Assembly: GCA_964304625.1 (NCBI GenBank)
Contig: OZ199838.1
Location: 7,334,035-7,398,034, forward strand
Direction: 5' to 3'
Source: Kudoa neothunni
Lineage: Eukaryota > Animalia > Cnidaria
DNA: 64,000 bases
Within the stretch, counting starts at the first letter, position 1. Every line of letters starts with the position of its first letter. A model generated the notes under the pieces. It was given only the letters and a program-made list of their open reading frames with translations, was not told where the DNA came from and did no database searches. Below are positions 2,899-57,708 of the stretch, piece by piece. Position numbers and translations under genes: made by a program.

Positions 2899-5800
2899 AC
2901 TACAAAAGAATATTGATTTTGGTCGATACGCACGGTTATATGTCTTGAATCACTCCACTCGAAAGAAGGAACACACTCAAGGAGTTTATTGTTTCCCTCA
3001 GGAATGGTGATTAGATAGTTGTTGTGCTGCTTGAATGGATTGTTGATGAGACCGATGATAGAAAATTGTGACTAAAAGTAAGTGTTGATTAGAATTATAG
3101 ATCGAAAACCAAATTCTATGTATAATTTATGTTTGTATGTAGAAATACTTGCCATGTTTTCAAGTTACAATCCACCTTTGAAAATGACACCAAATACTTA
3201 CCATCGGGTGAAAATGATACAAAGCTAATTTCCGAATCATGTGCGGGAAACACAGTCAATTTTAAACTTCGCACATCATATAAACCTATTTTTCCTTGTG
3301 TTGTTCCTACAGCTAATTTTTTCATGGCTTCATTGTAGTTTACCATTGGGCATCTATAGCTGAGTTAGCATTTGAAGCCAAGAAACAAACAAAATTAATA
3401 CGAAAACATTTTTGATCGTTGATAAAGTTCGGTTGGTTTGTCTTTAAAAACCTTAGGACTTAAGCACTGTAGCACAATATCGAATATCTCTATCAAATAA
3501 GGGCAGATTTCAGTGTAACACACATCAAATATATGATTCATCATTTTGAATAGTTGCTTCTTAAAGATAGCTCCGATATTTAAGACATTAAGAGTATTGG
3601 TTTCGGTAGACACTGAAAAATCGTTCAAATAGTTATTAGGGAGACCGGCGGGTGTCTGTTGTTGTTGCTGGGATATTTTTTTGTTGTAACTATTCACATA
3701 CACATTATACATGTGGAGCGCAGTGGTTGAGCTGACTGAAATATTAGAAAGAAGATTGCTATTGGAGACATTGCGAATTATGTCAGCCTCAACACTGCTC
3801 AAAAGTTTGACAGGATTATGTGCAGCAATAGTGTTGAGAGTTTCTTGAGTGGCAGACCAAGTGTCCAACGCCTTGGTGTATTCGATTTTTGATGCTCTTG
3901 GTTGCTTCGAGCTATGATATTTCATAATAATTTCCAATGTGACAGAAACATCCAACAATGTTGCTAGCAGTTTTGTTAGGTCGATGTGTTGAGAAAACAG
4001 TTGAAAACCTCTCCCAATAAGCCAAATACTGGATCTTTTGGACGGTGTTGGGTAGTGAACCTTTTGATTGGGGCCAAGCGTTATACTCTCCATCAAAAGT
4101 CTAGTTATTGTATGAAGTTTTGACTCTGGTAACACATCAGAAACTAAAATTTAAAAAATATTAAAAACCACATAAAAAAGATATTGTTACTTGATCTCAA
4201 GTTAAAAGTGGAGTTATTTTGGGAGACATAAAGTTCGCATAAAATAAAACTAATCATATACAGAGCTAATGTAGCGCGATGATGCACAGGAGTAGGCCAA
4301 TAACCATACGATCCACCGGACTCAATAACAAGTGAATTCTGTATACCAGGATAACTAATTGGGATCTGATCACTAGTGCCACTGGTGTACATATTATCAT
4401 AGAACGAAATATTATCAGGTAGGAAATAGCTCCACGCAAGAATCAAATTGGATACATATTTGATCCCAAGACGAGTTAATTCAGACAACAAAATTGAGCG
4501 ACTTGCTTCTCGAATATTGGAATTAAAAGAGAGCCAATGACGGATTAGTTCGTGAAGAATAACCCCCCTGAAATGGAATTGTTTACATTCGAAACTACGT
4601 GTGTTGATAGTAAAACAATAGAAATTGGCTAGACTACTCCAGTAACTTTTGATTGTGGTTATCAGGTCACTAGAATCGGATGATATAGTCTTTTTTTGGA
4701 AACGCGATTTTTCACATATGGATAAGTTGGAGGTGGCGGTTGTGGCCTCACCAGGAACCAAAGATGATATATTACCTATGGCGCACACCTGGCTAGATTC
4801 AACTCCAGCAAATTCGTTTCTTCCATCGATAGACGATTGGTTCAAGTTTAGTTGAGTTTGTACGGTACGTAACATGTCAATGTTAGAACTGCTAAAAATG
4901 TAATCCATCACAAACGAAGACTCAGCCCCAAGTATAGCATTCGCGATCGAAACAATCGTAACTATATGTTGAGTGAGCATCGTTTTCGAGCTATTCCAGT
5001 GTCTGATTACACTTTGTTGTATGTCGTCACTGCCACTACTGCTGGGTTCAGTTGGTGCTGCCGGAGGTTCCTCACTGCTGGTGTTGATAGTAGCACCAGC
5101 TAAATCTGTTGATGAATGAGGTAACGGCAACTGAGCCACTAGCTTCCCATGGGAAATAAGACCAAAACAAAACGCTTTTTGTGGATAATTCAACAGTAGT
5201 CTTTCCTCACACATCTTATCCAATTTTTTATCAAGTCCCCATGCGGACAGTGCTGAAATAAGAATCTTTATCGTTTGCCTTATCATTTTCGATTGGTAAT
5301 AGGCATGCTTTGTCAGATATTTAGAGTAGTCACAAATGTTGTTTGGAGGGGCTACTGCCAAACCAAGATATTTGAAACAAGAACTCATTCTTGAATTTTT
5401 TAGTGAATCAGTAGGTTGGTCGCTATCATTACCCGCTGAAGATATATTATGAGAAATGCTTGGATAGTTGACCGAAAGATTTATTGCTGATACTGGCCTT
5501 GTCTGAGACTGCACTTCCTCAGCAGATCCTGAAGCAGCAATAGGAGATTTTTTTAGGTATCCAACTCTAAGATTCTTTATGGACTTTAACGTTTCTTCCA
5601 AATAGTTGATAGTTCTAATGATGGCATCTGGATCAAAAAGTAGTACATGTATATCATCATTATGATAGCTGGTTCTAGCAGAAATGATATTGAAGGGAAG
5701 ATACTGATTCGTGGTGTGGCTGACATTCTCAATCAGTGAATTGTCCACTCGGTTAGCAAAATAGTCATCGTTCAACTCAGAATTCGAATAATTCAATCCT

Positions 5801-8800
5801 ACAGTAGATGACGACTGCAGGTTGGTCAGCGGCTGACTAGCCATATTGAGAGTGGTAGTGGCTTTATCAAATGTTCGAGAGTCACTCCTTGAAACAGTTG
5901 GTTTGGACGAAGTAGAATGAATAATGCCACTATTTGAAATGTTTTTCGCTTCAGCATCTTTCAGAGAACGCTCAGATTTATGGGTCAATTTATTGATACT
6001 ACTGAATGACTTCATTTTAAATGAACGCCTCTTCAATTTGCTTTTCTTTAGACTTAACAGATTTATGTGATGATTCGAGTGTAGGTGATGCCTGTGAAAA
6101 CGCAACTGATGCATCTGGTCGTTTTTCCCAGAATTTTGATTTTTTCCAAACTTCATAGCTATCGATGATGCGACTCGAGATATTTTTCTTTCGCTCGAAC
6201 GAGTTTTGTCATTAGAATTCACGTTCATTGAGCTTGAAGATATGCTTGGTGAATGGGTTACTTCGGTTATGTCATAAAATTCTTCCAATATTTCTAAAGC
6301 CAATCCACCACTAATACATCTGTCTAGCTTACCTACATATAAATATATTAAATCAATTTTCCTTTATTCATCCAGAGAATAATTTTAAACAAATGCTATA
6401 AAATATCTAGATATAAATTGGGCTTTCCCACACATTTCAAATTTGTGTACACTAATGAATTCCTGTAAAATAGTTTCAGCCGAGTTAGATAAAAAATGGC
6501 CATATTTATTATAAAAAAGAAATTAATTATATTTTTTATTTTATCAGTTGCATAACTATTTATATTATTATACGGTTAAATGTTTCCTATTTTAAAAAAT
6601 CTGAAATAATTATAGCATTATAAAATCTAGAATCACTTATAATTTTTAAGTTATTTTAACCCTCTAAATGATTTCATGATGTATTACACCCCAAACATGA
6701 TTTTAACTAAATATAACACTTTTCATGTTATTTGTACACATCAAAACTCATATTATTCTTGAAGATTATTTTGAAATTTCATTTTTGTAAATTTAAGTAA
6801 AAAATAAATTACATAAGATCATTCAAAAAATATTACCTTCCAACGATTTTTAAGCATAATACGTCCAATTTTTTTTATATTTATGATAGAAGTGTTATCA
6901 CATGCGATCGGTTTTAAAAAATCTTAATAGATTTAAATTTATTTCAATCCTAAAGTTGGAAAATTTAGTTTGCACATGCTTTGTTTTAATAATGATGGGC
7001 ATTTCGGAGGATTACAATAGTGAAATCTAGTCATCTGATAAGGAATTGGATGAATATTTTTCGGATATTCTGAAAAGTTGGATGAATCCATCCAAGCCAA
7101 TTTCATTGAGGGGTCATTGAAAAGTAACTTTGATTGAAAATGTTATGAATCACCGCCTTGGATCAACGACTTCTTGTTATCAGAGAATTTAATGCATTCC
7201 GATTTTTTCATCTTCTGAAAAAATATTTGTCGTGAAATAATAAAATATTCCAATTTATTCAAGAAAAAATTTTATAATGTGCATTAGCCAGATATTGACG
7301 AAATTGAATTCACCGGCTTCCTAGGAATTTTGATCTTAACCCTCCCGGGACGATGCGGGGTATTTCGGGGCCCCAATTTTCGCATTTATAAATTTTATCA
7401 TAGAAATTCGATTTTCATTGAACCCATATTATACGAATTCTCCGCTTAAGTACTAAAGTTTTTGTATGAACTAAAATTTGGCTTTAAATTTTGTTATTTA
7501 CAAGATTTTTGTGTTTAGCTTGTGGCAAAAAATTTATCCATTAAAACCTAATATTTAACATTATTTCAATAAAGTTTGATTCATAATTATATAATATAAC
7601 AAAAAATGTTTAAAATATATATATATATATATATAAGAAGAAAATTAGTCATATTGATGTTCAATCAAATTGGCTCCAATGTGGTTGAGGGATTAAGAAT
7701 GAGATTAACAAAATTCAAATTAAAGCTGATTAAATTGACGACTAAATGTTACTATTGTGTAGAAATGATATAAGGAAATCCGCGATACGTTCATTACAGG
7801 AGGTTACATCACTATGTTTCCAAAAGTTACTCTGGGAGGACGGCCAAACGTCCCAAATCGGAGCCTCGTAGGTGATCGTGGAACGCGCCCCTTCTACTGT
7901 ATAAACTCAACTTGGATTGAATTATCCAATGACAACTTTTTGTTTTCTTGCATATTGTTTTTATTTGTATAGCTATTGCGAAAGTAACAATTATTGTCTG
8001 TATTTAATTTTAATATAATTGAATTCTGAAGATAATGTCGAGCGATGATTCTGATTACCTCATTAGTGATCAAATAGAAAATGAAGACTATGACAGTGAT
8101 TTTGATTTTGAGGGTTCCATCTCAGATAATTCATATAAAAGTATTGAATCTTTTGAGTCATCAGATGATTTTTTAGATTTGTCTGACGATTCTAATGTCA
8201 TCTCTACTGCAAAGCCTGGATTCGAATGGAATTTTACTTAAAATTGTAGGACCAAAACTAGGTTCCACAACAACGTCGACAACATAATCTTGATTTTAGA
8301 CTCTTTTACCTTATTCTTTTCCGACGAGGTGTCGGAAAAGATTGTGTATTTTACAAATAAATACAACTTGAGTAACCCCAGATATTCAAGTGCAACATTG
8401 ATTTCCATTGATGAACCTCGCGCTTATATAGGGATATTAATTGCACCAGACAGATGTAACTGGAAAAAAACTATCGTTGAAACAGATTTGGGATAGTAAT
8501 CCACTGTTTAGACAATCTTTTTTTCCGTTGCACTGTCACGAGATAGATTTATTTTTATTTATCGAACCTTAAAGTTCGATGATAAATTAAATCGACCAGA
8601 AAGAATCCGTATTTCAGGTGATAGGCTCTAAACTATTCGTGAGATTTTCATCCTGATAAACGATTCCTTTCGCAAAAATTATTCACCCGACTCTTACATT
8701 ACGGTGAATGAAAGAATGATCGGGTTTAGAGGTAATTGTTATTTTAGAATGTATATGGAAGGAAAACCAGATAGATATGATATGAAATTATGGATTGCGG

Positions 8801-11800
8801 CAGATGTGAAGATTCCTTATATTTTATATATCCAGCTTTATCTGGGGAAAGTCAGAGGCACGAGAGATATTAAACAAGGGGAGAGAGTTGTAAAGGCATT
8901 GTTACAACCCTATTTTGGAACGCGTATAGGTCTCACTACCGATAATTTCTTTATCTCTATTCCATTAGCAATGTTTTTATTAGAGAAAAATATAACTATT
9001 ACTGATATGCTGAGGCGATATAACAGGTATATTCCACCAAAAATCATAGACATTAAAAGGAGTGAAAAATTTTCTTCCGTTTTTGTTTTTCGGATAACAT
9101 CACATTGGTATCATACTTTCCAAAAAAATAGAAATATTCTGTTACTTTCAATCGAACACAACGATTCTGCCGTAGAAAGAGAAGGGAGAAAAAGGCCCGA
9201 AATAATAACTCATTATAATAAGACTAAGGAAGATGTGAATAACGGAGACCGTATGACCAAAATATATAGTTGTGCTAGTACAATTAGAAGACGGTCTCTA
9301 CGTTTCCTTTTTGAACTAATTGATATTGCGGCTTTGAATGCGTGTATCATATACACCACAAAGTCCCCTGATTTGAGGAAAACAGATCGCAGTGGTCGAC
9401 AATATTACCTTAGGGAGTTAGCAACAGAGTTAATTACCCCGAATGTTGATAATAGAAAGAAGGCGTTACCAGCCTTACACAGCTATCATAAAGAAACCTT
9501 TAGAATCTTTGATGAATATGTTGGTATCAATACAAACAATGATTCAACTTTACAATTAAATATTACAAAAAATCGATGCCATTTCTACCCCAGAAAGAAA
9601 GACAGGAAAACCAAAATTCATTGTTCGAATTGTAACAAACCCATACGCATAACTCATAAATTCAGTAAAAATTTATCTTTGTCTATTGTGTGTTGATGAA
9701 AACTCTGATTGATTTTGGATATATTTCATTGTTTAAATTTATGATATTTTGTTCGCATTAAAAATTGGATATATCTATCCAGCGCCATGATTTCGTATTT
9801 GAATACTTGTTTTCTAATCTCATAAAACCTTATTTTATATGTATTTAATCGTAATTATTATATTGAGTCCACATTTACTTTGGAAAATTTATTACATTTA
9901 TTCCTATTACCTTGTTTAATGTGATTTAGTTCAAATAGTTTTAAATTAAAATAATAGTCAAAGATTACGTTTTTATCTATATTTTAAACCGAATATTTTA
10001 TTTTTAAAAGAAGAATAAACTGTTTATTTATAGGCACAAGAATGTACTTAAAATTAATCCCCACCGTACAAAATGTTATCGGTGCTTTCCGGAGCTAGTG
10101 ATTAAGCAGCTAATTCGGGTGACTCCAATGATTTGTAGAACTTTCTTTATAGAATTTGCCGTTACCGTTTATATCGACATTAAACCTAAAAATATGGTAA
10201 TGTTCACATTTTGGACTGATATTAGATCGAGTCTTGATTTAATGTGTTAATTTTCTGTTTTGAGGGTTTATCAAATTTTTTTCAAAACACAAAAATGTTT
10301 GAAAATTTTTATATGGCAGTTAAGAAGCAATAGATTGAGTTGATTATAAGTTCCAGTTTTTAAGCATTTACTCTTAAAAAATCATCGAAAATTTCTGGGC
10401 CCAAAGTACCCCCGCCGTCCCCCGGGGGATTTTTTTTACCACCATCAACCCTCGGAGGGTTGATGGTGGTAAAAAAAGTAGGGAGGGATCTCTTTATGAA
10501 CTTTTTAATGTAGTTGAAAGTTGAGAAATTTATTGTTAGCCTATTTTGCAATAAAAATTCAAGGAAGTGTCAAGGTCTTTCATTTTAAAAATAACTAACC
10601 AATTCAATATCAAAATATGAGTATAATCAATATCAATCACATTGTGAAATGGTGGTGAAAGCTAGATATTAACTCTTCCATTAGTGGTGAATTTTAGCTG
10701 AAGTATTTTTTCATTAAAAGTAAAATAATTTAATGGCGGCAAGGAAACGCTAAATATACCCGTGCTAAGTTGCCATATGTAAATGACCCCATCGCCACAT
10801 CCGAGTAACATAAGATCCTCATCCATTCTCCACTTTACAATTTGAACAGGAGAGTTGTTGGAGTTTGCCTGTACAATGTGTTTGCCGCTGTCAATATTGA
10901 TAACATTTACAGTGTGATCACTACCAATGGTGACGATTGAAGAACCGATGACACTACTTGAGTTGACAGGGACAGGCAGGATTTTGGTAATAACACCAGC
11001 ATGATAGCAGAAACAGGCGAGTTGAGTGAGAGTGATGATATTCCAAAGTCGTACAGTGAAATCAGCTGATCCACTGAGAAGATGTTGAGGTTGGTAATGG
11101 TCGTTTTCATCGTATGGATAGAAGAGGTAGGTGATTTTTTTGGTATGTCCGTAGAGATTGCAATATTCGCTTTCCTCATAGTCTGTGTCAGTAATGGTGG
11201 TGGTAGTTGCGTCCGAACGTAAAAACTCGAAACAAAGTGCATGTAGAGCAGGTATTAATGTGATATTGCCGTTGGTTCGACCAGCAGCGATAAATCCGGT
11301 TTCCGTTAAGAAAATTGAACAGCACACAGGGTTCTTATCGGTGTTGTCCTAATACGAACAAAAACGTCACGCTAAAATTTTTACACTACATTATTATACG
11401 ATTTTGTTGATTATATTCGGCGGCTGAGATTTGTTAAATGTGTCACTTAATCCAGTCACATATGTGGCTTCCATGTGAACCACATGGTCGTCCAGTATTT
11501 TTGGATAGTCTTCTCCGAAGCCCTCTTCATCGAATATTTCGCACATTTCATGGATTTGGTCGCACCAAAGCGAAACATGTTTGTTGAGGTCTTCCAGAAG
11601 GGGCAATCTCCAAAAAGTGATTCGCCCGCCAATACAGCCTTGAAAAATGACAGAGAAATTCATATTCGGGCGTGATTTGTTAAGCATGGTGACAGACAAT
11701 CCAGTTTCTCGTCGCTTAATCCAAAATATAAATCCCAACAAATAATCACCTAAATTGATCACATACGTCAGTGTGAAAAATGGCATATAAAAGTGGCGAT

Positions 11801-22600: not shown

Positions 22601-25600
22601 ATAAAAGAAATAAAATTCTTTCCATTATCGGAACTAGTTACAACTTCATTTTTAATCAATAGGTTATTTAATATGTTTTTAGAGTGTAGCTAAAGTAGCG
22701 CAGGGTTATTACCTAGCATGGTTATTGCGCACTTTTAGAAATAGCGTCGAAAATCAAAAATAAACGAATTAACTATGGATATAAATCGTGAGATGAGAGT
22801 AAAATAGATCGATAAATATAATTGTAGAATTAAGCAATAATTTTTTCGTTGGAAAAAATAGAAGTGCATGCTTATTACGCACCTGAAATCTGTTGTTTGA
22901 TTACATTGGCATGGTTAATACGCAGTAGGAAAATAGGAAAATTTAGGAACTAAGAGTGGCTCTAAAGCGAACATCGTTGGACACTTCGGCCTTAAATCAG
23001 TCACCACATCGAATACAATTGTATCAATAAAATCGAAAATATTTGTAGACTTTATTTCAAGTGATTTAAGATGTTGTCGCAAATCTCTTATAAAAAAATT
23101 CAAACTACTAGATATAAGAATGAATGGATCGAACTTTCGATAACGTGAAATATAAAGCTGTCCAGAGAATATAATATACAGTAGGTAACCAATTTCACGC
23201 ACTTTTTAAAAACCGATTTAATTAGAATATTGATTAGTCATTGTTTATATATGTTTCTTATATTTCAATCAAAAATTTTATAGAAATTATTTTAAAAAGT
23301 TGCTAAATAATGTAATTAAAAGTCACGTGATTGATCAATTCGCGCACTTTTTCTAGGTACTTCCTGTTTATTATTTAGTTAAGTCATATATGTAATGCCA
23401 AAAAAACTCCTATAACTATATCTATTGTCGAAGAGTACAATATTACTAATTATTATAAAAGTCTTCAATCTAACGACCCAAAAATTGTCACTGTATCACA
23501 TTTTAAAATATCTATTATCCCGACTCCTAATGGCATCCTAGAGATGAAAAATAAAATAATCAAAACCTATAAATGGTTGTATAATCTAAAAATAGAAATC
23601 ATTTGCATGAACGACAGTTTAATTCTGTTGATGAAAATGTATATGAGTGGATTGGGTAGACACGAAGCAGAAGAATTGTAGTAAGCGTCGTCATGATAAT
23701 TATCAAGAGAAATCAATTGGTCAAAGAAAGAGGTTTACCATCGTGTGCAATTCGTGGTATGTTTTTCTCTTTTTAAAAAAGGTCTAACATTAAAAAATCA
23801 AATTTTATTAGCTAATCTACTGTTGCCACCTCTGAAACTACTTCGTAATAGACCAATTAAATCAGAACATTTGTTAAAAGATACTCTGAAAATTATATTT
23901 ACAATGTAGACGAAACTGCCTTATTCTATCGATAGCAACAAGAGTATTTCATAGATCGTTGAAAAATATTTTTGTGATGTTAACACGTTTTCAGAGTTTT
24001 AATTATCGTTTTAAAAATTAATATATAGTTAATTAGCCTTTATAAACGCAATTTAATCATTATTAAATGCCAATTTTTTCTGAAATAATTGCGCACGCAA
24101 GTGCGTGAAATTGGTTTCTTACTGTAATAGTAAAATAAATTAGTCAATGGCATAAAGGACAACACTCCTATAACTGTCGGTCAAGGACAATTCCATGGGT
24201 TTGCTTTGAGAGTTAGTCTAAAAATGAACAAATAAAATAGAAAATCTAAAAGAAATAAAGGAATTACTCAAGATCCATCGCACCGAAATGCTGGAACACA
24301 TTACAAAGTTTAATTTCTCCTTTTGAAAAATAAAATAAACTTCGTTTAAAACTAGAGAAATAACAAATTTCTTGTTAAAAAAATAATTCTGTCTTAAACT
24401 GCCTTATTTATTTTCAAAATACTCTGTGAACAATCAAAAAATTATCACGAAAATTGTTCACATCTCTCTATTAAAGTTATTAATAGTGCAACAAGAGAAT
24501 AGATAAAAAAAGCAGATAAAGTGGTCGCGTACCCACCAAACTTTCACCTGTGTGTGCAGGCGCTAAGCATGGATATTAAGTAGTGCAGGGTTATTACGCA
24601 CTCGTGTCGTTGTCCCCAAAAAGTGCGTAGTATCCCTGCACAACTATATTGTGTCTTGAATTATTTTATTCCCTTTTTAAACATTTGATTGGAATTTTAG
24701 CTATAGTAAATAATTCGAATTCTTGAGAACATAACAAAGGGTTATAAATAATTTACTTTGGTATATGTCAAAAAATAAACTGCATATGCAGCGATAAAAT
24801 AGTAACTGCGTGGATTACGAATTTTGGCGCAAACGTGAACAGTATATAGGATTATATTTTGTATGAAGCAATAACTAAGGCCAGTTAAATATTAATAAAA
24901 ACCATTGTTGCAATAAATCGTAAATTTTGTGTTATTGATTCGTTAATTAGTAGTAATGTTGTTTCCCCTTGAGAACAAACTTTATATTACCATTATGCCA
25001 CTAATGTATCCTGAATATATTTTAAATTTATGTTAAGACAGTTTAATATTCATCTCGATTGTCCGCATGGATCATATCTCATTCGATAATCTAAATGTAA
25101 AATGAAAGAATAACTCAACTAAACTTTAGAGAATCAATCATAAATACAGTTTTGTTTAATAATTACACATAAAATCAATGATTGTAACTTTTTAAAGCGT
25201 AAATAATAGTTTGATATAATTAGTCTTATCTTTACGAAGACTGAAAGATGTTACCCTTAATTTGAAATATCTGCGCTTAATATTTTAATAAATATTCGTA
25301 TAAACGTATCATTAGATCTTATTGTTTAAATGATGGTTGATACTTCTTGTTTAAACGAAAATAATAATTAAATTTATTTTTACGACCAAGTAAAAAATAA
25401 AAGTATTAATTCAAATCACTTATGCTTCTCAATTCATCTAAAAATTTGTATCATTCCTATTCTTATTCCCAGTTCCTTTAAAATAAAATTAACTATCCAA
25501 CTGAAAGTATTGAAACCTATATAATTTTCATTTACCTAAGATATCCATAACCCATTAATAACCATTGAAAAAATAAAAGGTAAAAGATGTCAATTAAGGG

Positions 25601-25927
25601 ACACGGATTGATTGAGCCATAATAAAATAGGTTTATAATTTTAATATAAATTTATAACTGATATGCACAATTTTTAGTAATAAAACTTGGTAATAACCTT
25701 ATTAAACTTGTTTTTAATCCTTACTAAAGTATTTACTTTATTTATGATTGGTTAATTAAATTAGAGTCTCTATGAACGATGATGTGGACAAAATAAAAAA
25801 ATCTTACGATGAAGTTTTTTCCTCGCTGGATAAATTATGTGAAACAATGTATTCTTGTCATATATGTGATTTGTTTAAAATATTAAATTTATTCATTAGA
25901 ATGAATATGCCCGAAAGACAAATGTAG
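13673..25927 (+). CDS. CCDC28: Coiled-coil domain-containing 28 (CCDC28A/B, DUF4061-type); well-supported exons 14010-14085, 22393-22486, 25765-25848, 25900-25927; 5' exons and start uncertain
   Basis: Phase-compatible GT-AG splicing gives (SNLIENI)MDNHDLDENLSKLKQSVTSGKLKQQVIDEPEFYSAMQNIRSQQNEIAELHFKAYGNKVSMNDDVDKIKKSYDEVFSSLDKLCETIMNMPERQM*. This matches the CCDC28 core as I recall it ([21 protein letters not shown]...MEHVRGMQEKLARL..ELYG...L..L...I). Confidence 0.75.
15480..15900 (-). mobile_element. Highly degraded Mutator (MULE) transposase remnant; boundaries approximate
   Basis: The minus strand reads INSTVFINVPLYLTATIDS...CIVVTGK...YKFH, resembling the MULE DxT/PL/D/CxxH layout, with many stops. 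Confidence 0.4.
17271..18160. mobile_element. hAT-type non-autonomous element (MITE)
   Basis: TIRs CAGGCTTCCTGATT / AATCAGAAAGCTCTG flanked by 8-bp TSD TTTTAGAC (17263-17270) / TTTCAGAC (18161-18168). Contains a G17 run at 18113-18129. Confidence 0.75.
18196..19016. mobile_element. hAT-Charlie-like MITE remnant
   Basis: Left end CAGCGGT...GGCCCGTGGGCCGGATC...CGGCC and right end ...AAGTGTCCATCCCTG resemble Charlie-type ends. No clean TSD. Confidence 0.5.
20040..20900 (-). mobile_element. Merlin (ISXO2-like) transposase remnant; boundaries approximate
   Basis: ORF 20183-20494 reads QRNAITLLHIIDAKVIKGSQTLIDDWPAYNGINSLGYGHIQMNHSKE, matching ISXO2 R.A.TL..II...GS.I.SD.W.AY...GY.H..VNHS, followed by TIETCW. 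Confidence 0.75.
22690..24648. mobile_element. Degenerate TIR element enclosing the pogo element
   Basis: GCAGGGTTATT...CGCACTTTT near 22700 is inverted relative to AAAAGTGCGTAGTATCCCTGCAC near 24620-24640. A second copy of the motif at 24584 forms a local hairpin. No TSD found. Confidence 0.4.
23179..24124 (+). mobile_element. pogo/Tigger deletion derivative
   Basis: TA|CAGTAGGTAACCAATTTCACGCACTT ... AAGTGCGTGAAATTGGTTTCTTACTG|TA. Internal IYNVDETALFYR (Tigger first-Asp motif) at ~23895-23932. Confidence 0.85.
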
Positions 25928-26184
25928 ATTAGTTAGTAGCACAAAAACGTCATAGTTTATGGGCGAGTCAGTATTTTGTATAAAAATATTTTCTATAACA
26001 AATGTGTCTTTTTTCCAAAAAGCCAACACCTTATGAAAGGGATAAACATATTATTTTCACCTCTGGGAAAAGTTAATCAAACTGCTATACAACTATGAAT
26101 AAATTACCAAGGCACCGATTTCCATATAATCAAAACGGCATATAGTTTTATTATATCGCTAGAACAAGCTCTTTACTTATCCTA

Positions 26185-29100
26185 ATGTTATTAGAACCTT
26201 TGTGTGTATATTTTTATTCGCTCCTAATCACATGTGCATGCGAGAATATTGACAATTATTCCAATACATGGGTAGTAAAATTCAAAAATATTGATCCCAA
26301 GAGCGCTGAATCAGTAATCAGCGAAAATGGGTTCAAAAATTTACATATGGTATTTTTATGAGTTCAGCTTTACAGTTTAAATGGTTTATTCTATTTTGGT
26401 TGTAGATGGGGTCCCACCATAACTTATTGTACCATATTAGACATGAAAAAGTGGCTCTAACTGACACGAAACCCTCGCTTCTTACTGAATTGTTGAAAAA
26501 GTCGAAAAAGGTACTTACTATTCTCTATAGTAATTTGTGCGCGCTAATATTTTACACCAAATGAGAACAACTGAGATTACTATTATCGAGCTGATTGAAT
26601 GCTTTTATATTGTTGGTGAGAAATGCTGCTATATTTGTATGGATTACCATCCTGAACACGATGATCAGTCGAAAAATCATCTTATAATTGGCTGGAATAA
26701 CTATATTTTTAACCTAAACGATCTAAAAACAATAATCAACAACACCAATGGAAAATTGTTGGAACCGCATCATTTGGATTTTGACGAAAAACAGCTACTT
26801 ATTTTCAAAATTAGCTATTTGATTGAACGAACAGATTCAGCAACAATAAACTGTGTAATGGTAACCACAAAAAGGGAATACTCACTCAGTTTCGTTAAAG
26901 GAAAGCTGTTAATGGATAGTGTTGAGCGTAAGAGCCACAACGAACCACTTCCGCCCAATGGTTCAATACTTTATCGATCTTTCCTGAAAATTAAAATGCA
27001 TTCTTCGTTTAGCTTGGAGAGATTTAAAGAAATGCTGGTGAAATCAGTCATTGAACGGTTATATGATAAAAATACCGATCGAAATATCCATATCATTCTT
27101 CCCAATTTTATGTATAATAATAACGATACCGTTAAAAACTTTCAATCTTCGAAATTGACAAGGACTGATTCCCGAAAGATGATGAGTGATTTGAATACAT
27201 ATGAAAGTAATCCCCACTCTAATACAAGTTATACACCGTACAAATATGTTGAGGGAGATGGTGTAAATAACTCACCGAAATCCTTATCTTTAACCCAATC
27301 ACTCAATGAATCATACCTACATAACGAACTGGTTGTTGCCAAACTTGAAGATATTACGTATATTCGCCAAAACCGGAAGAAATTTCAATATGTCGGTCAA
27401 TTCAATAAACAAGTGTTGATTTTTTCGGAGTATCGAGATGAAAATATTTCTGGAAGTGATCAAAAAGTAAATTCGAGCTTCCTGTTAGTAGACCAACACG
27501 CTGCACATGAAAGGATACGTCTTGAATACTTTTACAAACAAATACAGTGTTTGAAGAAAAATCCCAATTTATTGACCACCTTGAATAATCCCATAGTTTT
27601 GAAGGGAAAATCTAGAAAACTCATTAACGTAATTTATAAATTGTTACACTTATTTTTGGAAAATGGTCTTGATATTATTTGCTATCGATCCACCAATCAA
27701 ATAATTATCAAAAGATGTCTACCATTTTATTCAGAAAATATTTCCTTATTTGTTAACTGTATAGAAAACGTGTTTGAGTGTGTGTATTGTTACCAAAATG
27801 AAATTATGTTCAATATGGAAATTAACTCGTTTCTGAAGAAATTATCATGCTGTAGCGCAATCAAGTTCAACCAGATTGTATCAAGAAAAAAAGCTCTTTT
27901 AATTTTTAATTCTTTATTCAAATGTTCCTACCCTCAGTATTGTTCTCATGGACGCAATAGCATAGCTCTCTTAAAAAATTAGCGTTTATTAAATTTTTTA
28001 TCAAAGGTTGTTTGGGTTGAACAGCAAAAAATTCAAGAACGTTTCAAAAGAGATTACATTCCTACTGACCCAAATTTTAAAGATATGTGGTATTTGGTAT
28101 ATTTATTTTCGTTAAAATTGGCCGTTATTTATTTGTGATCCAATTACTAACCTATGACTACATCTTTAGCATAACACAGGACAATCGAGTGGACCTGCAG
28201 GAGTAGACATCAATGTGATTCCTGTTTGGTCTCAGAATATCACAGGACGTGGTGTAGTTATATCAGTCCTTGATGATGGTAAGTTATCTATTAGAAATAC
28301 CTGTTTGATATTCACGCATAATCGTTAAATAGGTGTGGACTACACGCATCCTGATCTTATGGAAAATTATGTGAGTGCAATGTGAAGTTTTTCTTTATGA
28401 ACTTGAAACATTCCGATAGGATACAAGAGCTAGCTTTGATTTTAATGACCATGATTCCGATCCCATGCCTAGGGATTCAGACCCCGATAATTGGTACGAT
28501 TGTTCGAAATACTGAATGAGTTGGTTATTAGAATTTATTATGTCATTATCATATTTCAGTTCTTTTACGATAACTAATTTTTTTGGATCACCTAAAATAT
28601 TTTAATTGAAAAATGATTATAACCTGCGATTATTTTTAGCCATGGAACGAGATGTGCTGGCGAAGCAGTGGCTACTGCCAACAACGGCATTTGTGGAGTG
28701 GGTGTAGCTTTTAATGCCAAAATTGGAGGTAAAACGTGATGTACTTCTCACCGTTAAGCATCTTTACAGGAGTACGGATGTTGGACGGCAGTGCAACGGA
28801 CGCACTGGAAGCTAGTTCATTAGGATTCCGGAACGATTACATTGATATCTATGTAAATTGTTGGGGTCCAAAAGATGATGGAAAAACCTTTGGTAAACCT
28901 GGTCCACTTGCAGCTAAGGCACTTAAAGAAGGTGCTGAAAAGGTATTTTTGATTTTTTTCTGTCAGAAACATCATTGATAATGTCAAGGGACGAAAGGGA
29001 CTTGGGTCACTCTATGTATGGGCCACAGGAAATGGAGGTCTCACTGATGATGACTGCAATTGTGATGGTTACACCACAAGTATATACACCATCAGTGTTG

Positions 29101-30487
29101 GCTGTATTGGTGACCACGGGCTTTCTGCATACTACACCGAAAAATGTTCTTCCACAATTGCAGTAACATTCAACGGAGCGTCACACCGGGAAGGAAAAGA
29201 AAACAAAATGGTATTTCTGCAATAATTTCCGAGTTTGAAATTTTCATATCCTCCTTCAAATAGGTTACAACAGATCTCTACCATCAATGCACAACTGAAT
29301 TCAAGGGAACGTCGGCTTCAGCTCCTCTTGCTGCTGGAATTTTGGCACTCGTCCTAGAAGCCAAGTTAATTAATTATTTGATTATGTGTAAAAATTCTAA
29401 ATAGCTCCAAATTAACTTGGAGAGACGTCCAGCATTTGATCGTAAGAACCGCGAAAATAACAAGCCCTCTTGATGAGGGATGGAAAACCAATGGAGCTGG
29501 ACTTCATTTTAATCACAAATTTGGATTTGGCAGAATGGATGCAAAGGCGTTGGTTGACGCGGCTAGAACATGGAATAATGTTCAACCACAGCGTGAATGT
29601 GAAGGATTCTTTGAACATGAAAAAATGTAATTTGTAGAAAGATCGCAATATATAGCTTTATTGGGGTTTAGTAATATCCCCATACGGAACAACCTAGTGA
29701 TCCAATTCAAAACCGACGCTTGTAGCGGAAGAAAAGATGAAATAAAAAAACTTGAGCATGTCGTTATCACTATATCATTGATCCATCGAAGAAGGGGTGA
29801 CTTAAGTGTCGACTTAATTTCTCCGAGTGGAACCAAAAGTCCCATTCTAAGCACAAGAAAGTATGACAACTCTGACGAAGGCCTTGACGAATGGAAATTT
29901 ATGACTGTTCACTTTTGGGGTAATCAAATTATATAGAATTTAAGCATAAACACTTTATAGGAGAAGATCCTTCTGGCACTTGGAGACTTATTATGACAGA
30001 TAGCCATTCGGCTAACAAAGGGGAAGGCGCTAAAGCAGACAACGAAGATATAGCTGAAAAATTGATCGACACCCAAAAAGAGAAACAAATGAAATATGTG
30101 GAGCAACAGCTTTCCTCCGTATATATTTATATAATTAAGCTGAACGTTCTTGTCGAATACATATTGGAATAGGATCCTAAATTTGATTTCCCTTATCCTG
30201 ATGGCGTTAAGCGAAACAAAGTGGGAATCGACGATAAAATTCATTATAGTGTCAGATCGAACATCTCCAGATCTGCGAAATCCAAATTATTATATCCAGG
30301 AATGGAGGATTGGAGTTTCATTAAAAAGGCACTTTTCAACAAAATGAAACCAAGCGAAGAGACTGCAACACAAAGAGTTCAAGTGAGCTCAGGCTATGAT
30401 AACCCTCAAATCAATTGTGTAAATGGAAAAAAGTGTTCTGGCATTGTTATTGATTGGAGCATTACATTTTATGGAACAGAAAAATAA
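26185..30487 (+). CDS. Subtilisin/kexin-like proprotein convertase (cnidarian PC3-like endoprotease), multi-exon
   Basis: Signal peptide [19 protein letters not shown] and prodomain YSNTWVVKF...ENGFKNL (exons 26185-26349, 26406-26510) splice in phase 0 to [15 protein letters not shown] (exon from 28007). Catalytic VLDDG, HGTRCAG and GTSASAP; oxyanion WATGNGG; P-domain RRGDL; ends [29 protein letters not shown] closely resembles Hydra PC3-like enzyme (from memory). Confidence 0.93.
26561..27982 (+). CDS. MLH3: MutL homolog MLH3-like, intronless, nested in intron 2 of the convertase; N-terminal ATPase domain degenerate
   Basis: 473-aa ORF from ATG 26561. It has [26 protein letters not shown] (MLH3-type DQHA-X2-E-X4-E), SCCSAIKFN (cf. 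ACHGAIKFN) and [11 protein letters not shown] (cf. PFQCAHGRPS). Confidence 0.85.
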   Translation: MRTTEITIIELIECFYIVGEKCCYICMDYHPEHDDQSKNHLIIGWNNYIFNLNDLKTIINNTNGKLLEPHHLDFDEKQLLIFKISYLIERTDSATINCVMVTTKREYSLSFVKGKLLMDSVERKSHNEPLPPNGSILYRSFLKIKMHSSFSLERFKEMLVKSVIERLYDKNTDRNIHIILPNFMYNNNDTVKNFQSSKLTRTDSRKMMSDLNTYESNPHSNTSYTPYKYVEGDGVNNSPKSLSLTQSLNESYLHNELVVAKLEDITYIRQNRKKFQYVGQFNKQVLIFSEYRDENISGSDQKVNSSFLLVDQHAAHERIRLEYFYKQIQCLKKNPNLLTTLNNPIVLKGKSRKLINVIYKLLHLFLENGLDIICYRSTNQIIIKRCLPFYSENISLFVNCIENVFECVYCYQNEIMFNMEINSFLKKLSCCSAIKFNQIVSRKKALLIFNSLFKCSYPQYCSHGRNSIALLKN

Positions 30488-30899
30488 TGCAATAAAATTT
30501 TACATTATATATATATACTAATTTAATTAAAATCATTATTCAATGGCTTTTTTATCTTTTCTATTTTGAGATATTTTGATACGCATCGAATAATTTGCAT
30601 GTAAGCTAAATAATTTTTCATGTTCATAATCATAGAAAAGTAGATTAAACTGTTGTTGGTATATTAGTTGACTTTTATTTTATCCCATAAATATATATAG
30701 AGAAGTAGTGTTCGTTTGTGATTACTCACAAACCCACTCTTTATACTTTATACAGCCTTTAGAATTCATTCGAATTGATAAATACACTTTAGAAAATAAA
30801 TTATTTATTATAAATTTAAAAAGTCATCATGTTGTAGATAGATACTGTATTTTCTGTTTTTAAAAAAAATAGTAACATATTTTTTACGTGATTGCATCA

Positions 30900-31900
30900 T
30901 CAATAGTTTGTTTGTCTTTTCCAATAAGTAGAAAGCAATAATAAAAATTAAACTTTTGATTTTGATTTTGAAGACTTAAAGCTGTTTTAAAACAATGTGC
31001 TACGCAAATATTGCATATTAAAGCTACCGCTTCAACATAATCAATGCGAATAGTACATACGTAAAAAAAATAATCTCGATGAAACCTTCGTTTCAAATGG
31101 TCCCGTATTTTCCAAATATATTTTTCAGAAACAAAGGAAATAATTGTCTGGAAATAGATGTAATATCTGTTGTTGTCGGTAATTTACGGAAAAGGTACGT
31201 TAAAACAATTTTTATCGAAGTTTTAATGGTCACCTCAACCCTTACCAGACAATCGTTCGGTAATATAATAATACTTAAATATTTTGTTCGAGCAGATTGT
31301 TGTTTCAACGAAGGCGAATTTAAAGAATCGAGGCGTTTCCCTTATCGTTGCCGAATTGTCTGACTTTAAAAATAGACTCTTACTTAACATTAAAGTTTTT
31401 TGATGTTGATAACAGAGCCAAAAAAGAATCATTACGCTTGATTAAAATATCTAAATGAGTGAAATATTATAACAATTGTAAATAAGGTGTCAGAATTGTT
31501 ACTAAAGTATGAAATTATCTACGAAAAATGTACGGTTATCGTATCGGATTCTGCACAATATATTAAAAAATATTTTAATAACATGCCGCCCGCATCTAAC
31601 CACATTAGCCAAACATATTGTTATTTTTACCTGATTCATGATACAATAAACTAATTAATTGATCCAGTCTTACCTAATATAAAGCGATTCTGTATAGAAT
31701 TTTTGTCTTTAATTGCTAGGAATAAACCTACTAAAACTCAATTCCTATATTTTATTCACAAAAATGAACTATAATATACAAAAACAATTCTGCTTGTAAT
31801 CAATATAAGATGGTAAAGTTTGTATAACTACAATTTAACTTGTCTTGAATATTTGTTTAAACTACATTTTATATCGAATCAACATATAACATAATAATGA
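30900..31900 (+). mobile_element. Degraded hAT/CGGBP1-like transposase remnant; boundaries approximate
   Basis: Fragments LKNRGVSLIVAELSDFKNRLLLNI (cf. IxVDETTD..R..LN) and YEKCTVIVSDSAQYIKK...HISQTYCYFYLIH (cf. SDAAxYMxKA...C.AH.LH); many stops. Confidence 0.5.
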
Positions 31901-35545: not shown

Positions 35546-36642
35546 ATGGATCACCACCACAGTAATATTGAGAGCATGTCTGATTCAGATTCCTGTGAAC
35601 ATGAAACTTCTCTTGTTCAAGTATCGAAGCAGGAACGGAAGCAAAGGACGACGATTTCCATGAGTAAAAGGGAGAAAATACATGGGCTTGTTCTTTTAGG
35701 GATGAGTACTACTGCAATTGCCTCCCAAATTAAGTTACCAAGGTCAACCGTGGCCACAATAATTTCGAAGTTCCAAAAGACAGGAGACATCGAACCAAAA
35801 CTTAGAGGAGGCGACAAACGCTCTATTTTGTTATTAGAGCAGAAAGAGAAAATTATTTCATGGGTGGACGAAAACTCCATGGTAACGCCAAAGGAGCTCA
35901 AACAAAAGGTTTTGGATGAATTCAATTTAATCGTGTCTATTAGCACCATAGATCGAGTGATTGGTGAATTTCACCACACATTCAAAACTTTAGTGACTGT
36001 GCCCGAAAGGAGAAATTGCGAATCCACCTTGGAAAAAAGGAAAGAATACGCAGACATGTTTCGCAATTTGGAAGTATCAGAGCGACATGAAAGCATAATT
36101 TTTTTAGATGAAGTTGGCTTTGCAGTCGTTATCAGACCAAAGCGAGGTAGGTCGCTAAGAGGCACATCTGCTTACGCCTTCGTCAGTGCCGCCAGGAGCA
36201 GAGATATTTCTGTGATTTCTGCCATTAATAAAAATTCCATTATTTACCACAAGATTCACGACAAAGCTGTCACCGGTGAAGATTTTAAACATTGCCTCAT
36301 CGAATTAAAAAACGCTTGTATGGGAAAGAGGATAGAAAACCCGGTATTCGTTATGGACAATGCTAGAATACACCATTACAAAGGTCTCGAAACGGTGATT
36401 TAGGAAGAAAATTTAAACATTAAATTTTTTTCCCCCATATTCACCTTTCTTGAATCCGATTGAAAATGTATTTTCAGTCTGGAAAAATTTAGTGATAAGA
36501 AGACAGCAAAAATGAAAACGAACTGAGGATGGCAATATCTGAATGTTTTCAAGAAATCACTCCTAATCACTGCGATAGTTTCTATCGCAAAATGTTAGGC
36601 TATCTTTCCAGGTCGTCTCGGCGGGAGATAATCTTAGAATAA
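35546..36642 (+). pseudogene. Tc1/IS630-like transposase with premature stop and frameshifts
   Basis: HTH-like N-terminus, IFLDEVGF and VMDNARIHH, then TAG at 36401-36403. After a frameshift it continues PPYSPFLNPIENVFSVWK. Confidence 0.9.
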
Positions 36643-55889: not shown

Positions 55890-57708
55890 ATGATAAATAA
55901 AAATAATACATTCAATAACTTGGATAACTCAGCTCTCCGGCAGGCTATCCAAACATCAAGCGTAGCTAATAGGAATGTTGAAATGAATTATGACGTCCGA
56001 AAACGTCTGACCGAAACAGGAATGCCTCTCCCCCGCCAGCATCTTCAAGATATTACCAATCGTCAAGGTGAGTGTAGATTGTTTTAGGAATTTATCCCGT
56101 CATTAAGTAATTTAAATATCAAATATCCATTATTGTGGGTGTGTAATAACCTGATTTGGATACCAAATTGATTTTTAATCACATTGTTAGATAGATATTT
56201 CAGCTAATTAGATGGGTAATCGACTTTAAAATTTTTAACAACAAAATAGACTCACGATCTCTTCTAACTAAATTTTTTCACCTCCCACATCTAGCATTAC
56301 CTAATGAACTCGGTTATGATAATGATTGTGTTTTTTAGGTGACAACTACAATCGTTGGATAAGACCTAGTCCAAGAAAAGGTGCTATGAGTGGATTCAAC
56401 CCTCAAATAAACTTTTCACCAATTAGTCGGGCACCTCAAAGGAGTATTCCATCTGGTGAAAACTTCCCCTATAATCAACCTTATATTGCCACAATTATAA
56501 CCAGTCCTTCATTAAATCGCTCAACAACTTCTTCAGAAAATTTTGTAAGCGTGGGTGGAGTAGGCAAAAACAAACGTCCTCGTAAAGCGAGGAGTATATT
56601 TTCTGCGGAACAACTAAAAATTCTAAACGATGAGTTTGAGCGTCACAATTACATCAATAACTTTACGAGGGAAGAATTAGCGAGTAAAACTGGTATCACC
56701 CCCGAACAAGTTAAAATATGGTTCCAAAATATGAGAAGCAAACGTCGAAAGTCTTACGAACGAGCTGCTCAAAACAATTTCGGTTTTGACTACGCCACTC
56801 TGCAACAATATGGCAATATTTCCAGTATGAACACTAGTATTCCACTCATGACGCATTTTATACGAGGCCAACCAACCTCAGCACCCTTCGCCAATCCTCA
56901 TTCAGCCACAAATGTAATACATCCAGCTCCTGGGAGCTATTCAGGAAGCAACAGTAGTAGCGGATCAAACAGTTTCACTTACAACAATCCCAATGACCCA
57001 CGAACAAGCAATGGCCACGGCAACCCCCTCAATGTAAATAGGAACAACTCTATCTCTGTCAGCACTAGTCAACCCACTGTTTATTGGGAATCTTCCAATA
57101 AAAACCATCAAAGCAAACTGAACAATACCAGTGGATATGCATCAGCAAATAGCAGCCACTTACCACCTTTCAATCCTAATAACCAAAGCTACCCCTCACA
57201 ACAACCACACAACTATCCAGTGAAGGATTCTCGTAATATCAACAGCACAGCACCAGGTGGCATCAACTCTACAGCCGTCAGTCATGTGCAGATCACAAAT
57301 AACAAAAGTTCTAACTTTATCGCACCTGGATTTGCTTCAACTTTATACAATGCCAAAATGAATGGTGAGAATAAGAATGGTAGTGCTGACAGTAACCAGT
57401 CAAAAACCTCGTCAGCGTATGTCTTAAATAGACCTGTTAATGCACCATTATCACATGAAGGTGGTCGTGTCACCCAGTCGACCAAACAGTATGTCACCTC
57501 AACTCCACAACCGCAACCTAGAAACAGTGGACAGTCGAACTCTAGCAATTTCCAAAAGACTTCACTTCCATCATTCAATGAGACCACCAATAGCACTGCC
57601 AAACCTAAAATATGCCCACCAACAAGCACGGTCCCCACAGATACCACATCCACTTCACAACAACCCTCTCATCAGCCCAATGGGTCGAACACAAGACCAA
57701 ATCCCTAA
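55890..57708 (+). CDS. ANTP-class homeobox transcription factor (divergent Dlx/NKL-like), exons 55890-56067 and 56339-57708, ~515 aa
   Basis: Homeodomain at 56578-56757: PRKARSIFSAEQLKILNDEFERHNYINNFTREELASKTGITPEQVKIWFQNMRSKRRKSY. Phase-1 GTGAGT...TTTTAG intron; long S/N/P/T-rich tail. Confidence 0.88.

Follow-up and report, generated by a model that had tools for sequence, protein, structure and literature searches.

Architecture of the locus

We analysed a 64,000-nucleotide stretch of the genome of Kudoa neothunni, a tuna parasite among the myxozoan cnidarians (assembly GCA_964304625.1, contig OZ199838.1, positions 7,334,035 to 7,398,034 of the forward strand), hereafter called the window; positions are counted from its first letter. 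The window carries a gene for a furin-like proprotein convertase, the second intron of which is almost entirely filled by an uninterrupted, same-strand open reading frame (ORF) for a MutL homologue of the MLH3 type. The features of this host/nested pair are as follows:

26185-26349, + strand: convertase exon 1, with the start codon, the signal peptide and the first part of the S8 pro-domain; it ends in phase 0 and is followed by GTATTT
26406-26510, + strand: convertase exon 2, 35 codons from the middle of the pro-domain, ending ...LLKKSKK and followed by the donor GTACTT
26511-28006, + strand: host intron 2, 1496 nucleotides (nt), phase 0, GTA...AG, with ...TCAAAG directly before exon 3
26542-26558, + strand: candidate promoter-proximal element, CGCTA followed by an initiator-like TTACACC, 3-19 nt before the nested ATG; a post hoc and weak assignment
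26561-27982, + strand: nested intronless ORF, 1422 nt, 473 codons plus TAG, for an MLH3-type MutL homologue
26561-27355, + strand: N-terminal half of the nested ORF, amino acids (aa) 1-265, coding-like and orphan
27356-27979, + strand: MutL dimerisation/endonuclease domain, the C-terminal part of the nested ORF, recognised by Pfam, alignment, AlphaFold2 and Foldseek
27988-27993, + strand: ATTAAA hexamer, between the nested stop (6 nt away) and the host acceptor (13 nt away); a weak poly(A) signal candidate
28007-28096, + strand: convertase exon 3, opening GTTGTTTGG, with the end of the pro-domain and its RFKR cleavage site; phase 0
28170-28278, + strand: convertase exon 4, in which the catalytic domain begins and the catalytic Asp is found (...VVISVLDDG)
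to at least 30480, + strand: later convertase exons, with the P domain at 29661-29933

The end of exon 2 at 26510, the start of exon 3 at 28007, the phase-0 intron between them and the 1422-nt ORF within it had all been claimed in the first-pass annotation of this DNA, and they were borne out by the sequence and the ORF table. The ORF lies wholly inside this one intron, of which it occupies 95%, and leaves 50 nt on the 5′ side and 24 nt on the 3′ side.

The local DNA has a GC content of 31-32% and a stop codon frequency of 7.7% per codon; the chance of 473 stop-free codons is about 4e-17, and the ORF is the second-longest open frame of the window. Its codon log-likelihood was +0.11 in frame, compared to −0.4 in the other frames and −0.29 in nearby non-coding DNA. 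Taken separately, the N-terminal half reached +0.15 in frame and −0.4 and −0.6 out of frame, on par with the C-terminal half. The ORF is native to the genome in GC content and codon usage. Searches of the K. neothunni assembly (40.26 Mb, the scope of all genome searches reported here) found it as a single copy, at the DNA as well as at the protein level. An Rfam scan of positions 24000-31000 returned no match to a non-coding RNA.

A MutL endonuclease domain in the C-terminal half

The Pfam domain MutL_C matched the nested ORF with E=3.2e-7 (30.6 bits, with a cut-off of 25), MutL endonuclease models of NCBIfam matched it as well, and its closest solved relative by sequence was the C-terminal domain of yeast Mlh3. 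A phmmer search that covered 1.84 billion representative proteins yielded 351 matches, all of them within aa ~270-470 of the ORF and the best one with an E-value of 3e-11; among the named matches are Mlh3-like proteins from the cnidarian genera Hydractinia and Sanderia. Neither this search nor a word-based one brought up a protein closer than E of about 1e-11. AlphaFold2 modelled aa ~255-473 at a predicted local distance difference test score (pLDDT) above 90. Foldseek placed yeast Mlh3, as solved in complex with Mlh1 (C-terminal domains; 6rmn_B and 6shx_B, E=3e-11), at the top of its matches.

The invariant columns of the endonuclease domain were taken from an alignment of 44 sequences, and the ORF has kept all eight of them: D311, H313, E317, C430, C461, H463, G464 and R465. 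Both the DQHA(X)2E(X)4E motif and the Cys/His metal ligands are represented among these columns. The motif itself lies at aa 310-322, where D311, H313, E317 and E322 fall into invariant or near-invariant columns. A string of 12 residues within it (aa 311-322) is identical in the cnidarian MLH3 matches, whereas the PMS gene of Kudoa carries DQHAADEKFNYE at this place instead. In a maximum-likelihood tree the ORF stood outside the clade formed by Kudoa PMS and bacterial MutL (support 95/74). The identity of the motif and the best match in the PDB favour an assignment to MLH3 over PMS1/PMS2 or MLH1. The MLH3 endonuclease motifs reported in the first-pass annotation thus held up in the Pfam search, the alignment and the structure match.

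An orphan N-terminal half

For aa 1-265 no match to a GHKL ATPase domain (HATPase_c_3) was obtained with Pfam or NCBIfam, nor with hhalign against a profile of 17 MutL N-terminal domains, BLASTP against the N-terminal domains of MLH3 proteins or phmmer. Motifs I-IV of the GHKL ATPase, which belong to the hallmarks of MLH3, were not found in the nested ORF, and hidden Markov model searches gave no match to the transducer domain (DNA_mis_repair) in it. Since this half has lost all recognisable GHKL motifs, the nested protein would provide no ATPase of its own. AlphaFold2 modelled it at pLDDT <50, with no alignment depth. Two weak hints concern its descent: 29 of 30 neighbours by ESM features were DNA_mis_repair clusters (0.90-0.91), and one NCBIfam model aligned aa 159-467 colinearly with its profile positions 314-607, which take in the C-terminal domain and the end of the N-terminal one. 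These hints suggest that the N-terminal half may be a collapsed remnant of a MutL N-terminal domain.

The ATPase domain was also looked for outside the ORF. Six-frame searches of the whole genome with HATPase_c_3 and DNA_mis_repair retrieved only MLH1, PMS, HSP90 and GRP94. Neither strand of the 1.6 kb upstream of convertase exon 1 (~24170-25770) has an ORF that reaches 30 aa, and an in-frame TAA at 26531-26533 closes the nested frame on its upstream side.

Two of the matches to the endonuclease domain (P0012 and P0019) carry an odd C[IS]HGRN motif and come from unrelated AT-rich protists; no convertase lies beside either of them on their contigs. CIHGRN-bearing proteins of 172 and 274 aa that consist of MutL_C only were seen on L012 (a Logan contig of 920 bp) and L013 (3835 bp), and one such AT-rich protist contig opens with telomere repeats of the CCCCAAA type. 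MLH3-like proteins devoid of an ATPase domain may exist in other organisms.

The host convertase and its ancestral intron

The host gene was assessed exon by exon. The S8_pro-domain profile of Pfam matched exon 1 with its positions 1-27 and exon 3 with its positions 65-79, in colinear order, and the length of exon 2 fits the gap from 28 to 64 between the two. These colinear pieces, together with the exon plan of a paralogue, substantiated the earlier claim that the pro-domain of the convertase is split by the intron. A downstream exon matched P_proprotein with E=2.6e-17, and the motifs of the catalytic Asp (VLDDG) and His (HGTRCAGE) can be read in the exon translations. The host thus combines the S8 pro-domain, the subtilase domain and the P domain of a proprotein convertase.

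Four convertase loci were found in the genome. The paralogue on contig 3 (L023) has the same exon plan as the host, its exon 2 being of similar length and carrying a YHF/YHI motif, and it has a phase-0 intron of 55 nt (5894-5948) at the identical site, between ...IHQETD and IIWVQEDIEIKRFKR. In a second paralogue, an intron is found at a distance of three codons from that site. Because a phase-0 intron is present at exactly the same site in the L023 paralogue, the site of intron 2 is ancestral and older than the nesting, and it follows that the MLH3-like gene came to sit in an intron that already existed. The other introns of the host measure ~55-75 nt, and intron 2 is about 30 times as long as the median intron of the genome (49 bp). 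The published assembly comprises three chromosomes and the mitochondrial genome at 30.4% GC; its introns have a median length of 49 bp, and the median distance between genes is 3.6 kb (PMC12239612).

The 3′ border of the intron deserves a comment, since the stop codon of the nested ORF (TAG, 27980-27982) doubles as a candidate in-frame AG acceptor for the host. Exon 3 is in the reading frame of the nested ORF (27959-28096), with the TAG and eight sense codons in between, and splicing at the TAG would add RLLNFLSK to the convertase. We favour the acceptor at 28007, as it agrees with the paralogue. The AAG found there is acceptable given that the splice signals of Myxozoa are reported to have shrunk to GTa...AG (PMC13644364).

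MutL partners and the meiotic gene set

Only three loci of the genome bear MutL_C or a MutL N-terminal domain, namely MLH1, PMS and the nested ORF, and only two bear MutL_C, which are the nested ORF and a canonical PMS2-like gene. The latter (L010, G000:C1:7533000-7541000) is situated 175 kb downstream of the nested ORF on the same strand and consists of three large exons, with a full ATPase domain, the DQHAADEKFNYE motif and CPHGRPT. MLH1 is canonical and ends in ...VFERC; its C-terminal domain is spread over at least three exons.

Four MutS_V loci were detected. Two of them are strong and probably represent MSH2 and MSH6, and two are diverged (G000:C3:4132307-4132636 and G000:C1:11712544-11712899) and are candidates for MSH4 and MSH5. 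There are at least two genes of the Rad51 family, the second of which (C1:7190418-7191312) is possibly DMC1, and Mnd1 is present (C1:16980977). The TP6A_N domain of SPO11, a short one, was not detected in the genome, which does not prove its absence. Among the annotated proteins of Myxobolus and Henneguya no MLH3 was found, though a control query with a PMS exon of Kudoa retrieved their PMS2.

Signals at the borders of the nested ORF

A CGCTA as in the candidate promoter-proximal element is also found ahead of the start codons of MLH1, PCNA, a convertase paralogue and the host convertase itself, at a distance of 17-46 nt. In all, CGCTA sites before start codons were noted at 26542, 26157, 35519 and 37818 of the window, at 6006 of L011 on the minus strand, at 5800 of L024 and upstream of PCNA in both L032 and L033. 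CGCTA is often followed by ACAYY within a few bases, and it is expected in about 1.5% of 40-nt windows. The extended motif occurred 16 times, compared to 8.5 times in shuffles of 220 kb. A function as promoter-proximal element is possible, and we regard the motif, noticed post hoc, as a lead rather than as evidence.

At the start of the nested ORF, the convertase frame read on into the intron ends at a TGA (26562-26564) that overlaps the nested ATG (26561-26563) as ATGA, a stop-start arrangement of the type that serves translational coupling, with an estimated chance of roughly 0.03. At its end, the ATTAAA is not singular, as three more hexamers of this type occur inside the ORF.

Interpretation and alternative explanations

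We consider the nested ORF to be a single-copy, functional and very diverged MutL gene of the MLH3 type, in the same orientation as the furin-like convertase whose ancestral phase-0 intron 2 contains it, and we assign this reading a probability of about 0.68. As far as the sequence allows a prediction, the protein would pair with MLH1 as a nicking endonuclease resembling MutL-gamma, with a proposed role in the resolution of meiotic crossovers and/or a minor one in mismatch repair. The nested gene would be transcribed as a unit of its own, with a start inside the 50-nt leader, and its 3′ end would form at or just past the 3′ splice site of the host. One pre-mRNA would give either the nested mRNA or, upon read-through and removal of 1.5 kb, the convertase mRNA. 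That processing of the two mRNAs is mutually exclusive, as already proposed in the first-pass annotation, is a reasonable model with a precedent in mammals (H13/Mcts2, PMC13309782) and may be envisaged tentatively, with the odds against it. We find it rather unlikely that, in addition, stop and 3′-end signal are built into the host splice site, that life stage decides between nuclease and protease and that the MLH3 is active together with MLH1 without an ATPase of its own. Host/nested pairs and the competition between splicing and polyadenylation have been treated in the literature (PMC11694760, PMC3890989). The authors of the K. neothunni genome note that RNA reads mapping to the parasite are very few (PMC12239612).

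Several observations weigh against this reading or parts of it. No homologue could be detected for the N-terminal 265 aa. An ATP-binding domain is needed for the function of Mlh3, and an MLH3 devoid of it may be impaired or act otherwise. In yeast, Mlh3 contains such a domain (PMC3538346). Within the endonuclease domain, the metal-ligand cysteine C430 stands in SCC where ACR would be expected, and CSHGRN is found at aa 461-466 in the place of C[PA]HGRP, both of them deviations from the consensus. The branch of the ORF in the tree is very long (2.13 substitutions per site), and the ORF takes no settled place among the eukaryotic MLH3-like proteins. The control query with the PMS exon found no Kudoa protein in the protein collections.

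The border signals add further points on this side. Hexamers of the ATTAAA type turn up by chance in 8% of 24-nt windows, so that the ATTAAA is weak evidence; its position had been given correctly in the earlier annotation, but as an argument for polyadenylation it carries little weight, also because MLH1 and GRP94 have no such hexamer within 80 nt of their stops. CGCTA is missing upstream of five starts of Ras-family genes and does precede the ORF of a Tc1/mariner transposase. An E2F-like reading of a GCGCGC upstream of the ATG was tried and abandoned, as the element shared between genes shrinks to CGCTA, with the same exceptions among Ras genes and the transposase.

An alternative that makes do without a promoter would have the nested ORF expressed from the host pre-mRNA, either from an intron-retaining bicistronic RNA by termination and reinitiation at the ATGA or by spliced-leader trans-splicing to the AG at 26529-26530. 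In its favour, the ATGA overlap is real, a T/C-rich tract with an acceptor-like TAG lies 31 nt upstream of the ATG, and the room for a promoter is only 50 nt. Reinitiation, however, is inefficient in eukaryotes after an upstream ORF of ~107 codons and hence improbable here. Our literature search returned no report of spliced leaders in Myxozoa, and the leaders of PMS and MLH1 show no consistent acceptor. Moreover, myxozoan acceptors consist of just AG (PMC13644364), so that an "unpaired acceptor" is not recognisable from sequence. We judge expression by either route to be unlikely. Slightly harder to sustain is the view that the ORF is a relic of an MLH3 that lost its ATPase and is unused or unexpressed, stop codons not having been acquired yet. 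The undetectable N-terminal ATPase domain, the extremely long branch, the lack of an MLH3 among the annotated Myxobolus and Henneguya proteins where the PMS2 control succeeded, and the failure to detect TP6A_N of SPO11 would all be in line with a relic. Yet 473 open codons are unexpected without selection at the given stop frequency, the orphan N-terminal half looks no less coding than the C-terminal half, no invariant catalytic residue has been lost, and the domain is predicted to fold with pLDDT >90. We regard a relic as quite improbable.

The absence of an ATPase domain could also be explained if a larger MLH3 gene ended with this ORF as its last exon, its ATPase exons being located before or among the convertase exons so that the two genes overlap. 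MLH1 of the same genome indeed has a tiny first exon, the ORF starts nine residues before an ELIEC with a loose resemblance to the ELIEN of motif I, and an AG at 26564-26565 might be used as acceptor. Such an arrangement is very unlikely in view of the in-frame TAA just upstream of the ORF, of the genome-wide six-frame searches, in which the ATPase and transducer profiles found nothing beyond MLH1, PMS, HSP90 and GRP94, and of the stretch from ~24170 to 25770 with no ORF of at least 30 aa on one strand or the other. An artefact, finally, in the form of a mis-join or of contamination from the host fish, might be suspected because the parasite reads of the assembly came from a fish data set and their coverage was limited (PMC12239612). 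The published assembly, however, has a consensus quality value of 48.5 and Hi-C support (PMC12239612). Splice sites, phase and continuity of the pro-domain fit exactly across the insert, and the insert is single-copy and native in GC content and codon usage. We hold an artefact to be extremely improbable and retain the reading as a functional nested MLH3-type gene.

Comparison with known systems

Nested genes are common in animals, and the pair described here is a real but fairly ordinary case; what is unusual about it is the tight fit in the intron and an MLH3 without a recognisable ATPase. The first-pass annotation held that nested genes are more often antisense, which is only weakly true, the bias in orientation being slight in mammals (PMC11694760). 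In mouse H13/Mcts2 and in surveyed animal pairs, as in Kudoa, a complete coding gene is located in a host intron that lies near the 5′ end and is long for its genome (PMC13309782, PMC11694760). In H13/Mcts2, activity of the nested gene is tied to premature intronic polyadenylation of the host (PMC13309782), which is the either/or logic proposed for the present locus. Nested genes of mammals, however, lie in introns of tens of kb and have CpG-island promoters of their own, whereas in Kudoa the intron is 95% filled, with flanks of 50 and 24 nt. Compared to H13/Mcts2, the Kudoa pair shows no sign of retroposition or imprinting, and its host acceptor directly adjoins the nested stop and the putative poly(A) signal.

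With eukaryotic MLH3, as seen in Mlh1-Mlh3 (6rmn, 6shx), the nested protein shares the C-terminal fold according to the model, the 12-residue motif and the Cys/His ligands. It is also MLH3-like in being the sole MutL paralogue other than PMS and MLH1 in a genome whose MLH1 ends in FERC. Unlike MLH3, it has just 473 aa and no detectable GHKL ATPase or transducer, shows SCC for ACR and CSHGRN for CAHGRP, and ends seven residues past CSHGRN. Its divergence is extreme, with a best E-value of ~1e-11 compared to the ~1e-39 reached by the PMS gene of Kudoa. The host, on the other hand, resembles furin/kexin convertases in its signal peptide, its S8 pro-domain ending in RFKR and its subtilase and P domains, and differs from them in having one intron enlarged ~30-fold by a resident gene.

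The presence of an MLH3-type endonuclease together with MLH1, Mnd1, Rad51-family and diverged MutS genes argues that Kudoa has retained its crossover machinery. To our knowledge, neither a sexual stage nor an invertebrate host has been described for Kudoa, and the nested gene may serve as a marker for locating its meiotic stage. Should it prove active, an MLH3 that lacks a recognisable ATPase would represent a natural separation-of-function variant of interest for studies of MutL-gamma. The tight same-strand nesting in a genome with GTa...AG signals and a median intron of 49 bp also offers a natural test of how a long, gene-bearing intron is handled. Gene prediction guided by homology can easily overlook genes hidden in introns of such genomes.

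Origin of the nesting

The first-pass annotation suggested that the MLH3 copy may have arrived by retroposition, a proposal for which we found no positive support. The flanks of the ORF contain neither a poly(A) tract nor a target-site duplication or other flanking direct repeats, and there is no parental or second copy in the genome. Of the hallmarks of a retrogene, the ORF shows the lack of introns and none of the others. An old retroposition followed by loss of the parent is possible.

The statement that every other gene in the window is spliced proved overstated. A fragment of a piggyBac-type transposase (8704-9693), a Tc1/mariner transposase with a paired-like helix-turn-helix (35546-36400), a homeodomain ORF of 460 aa (56326-57705) and an orphan ORF of 719 aa without a Pfam match (4147-6303, minus strand) are likewise long single ORFs. 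Intronlessness is nothing special here and lends retroposition no positive support.

Near-identical gene copies elsewhere in the genome

Two genes of the assembly were met in near-identical pairs. PCNA is present in two copies with near-identical upstream DNA, 67 kb apart on the same strand (L032, G000:C1:8477672-8477893, and L033, G000:C1:8544848-8545036). The two copies of a Rho-like GTPase (L034, C3:8229843, and L035, C3:8851334, on the opposite strand) are 620 kb apart and inverted, and their upstream DNA is near-identical too. Both pairs are recent segmental duplications or residual haplotype copies.

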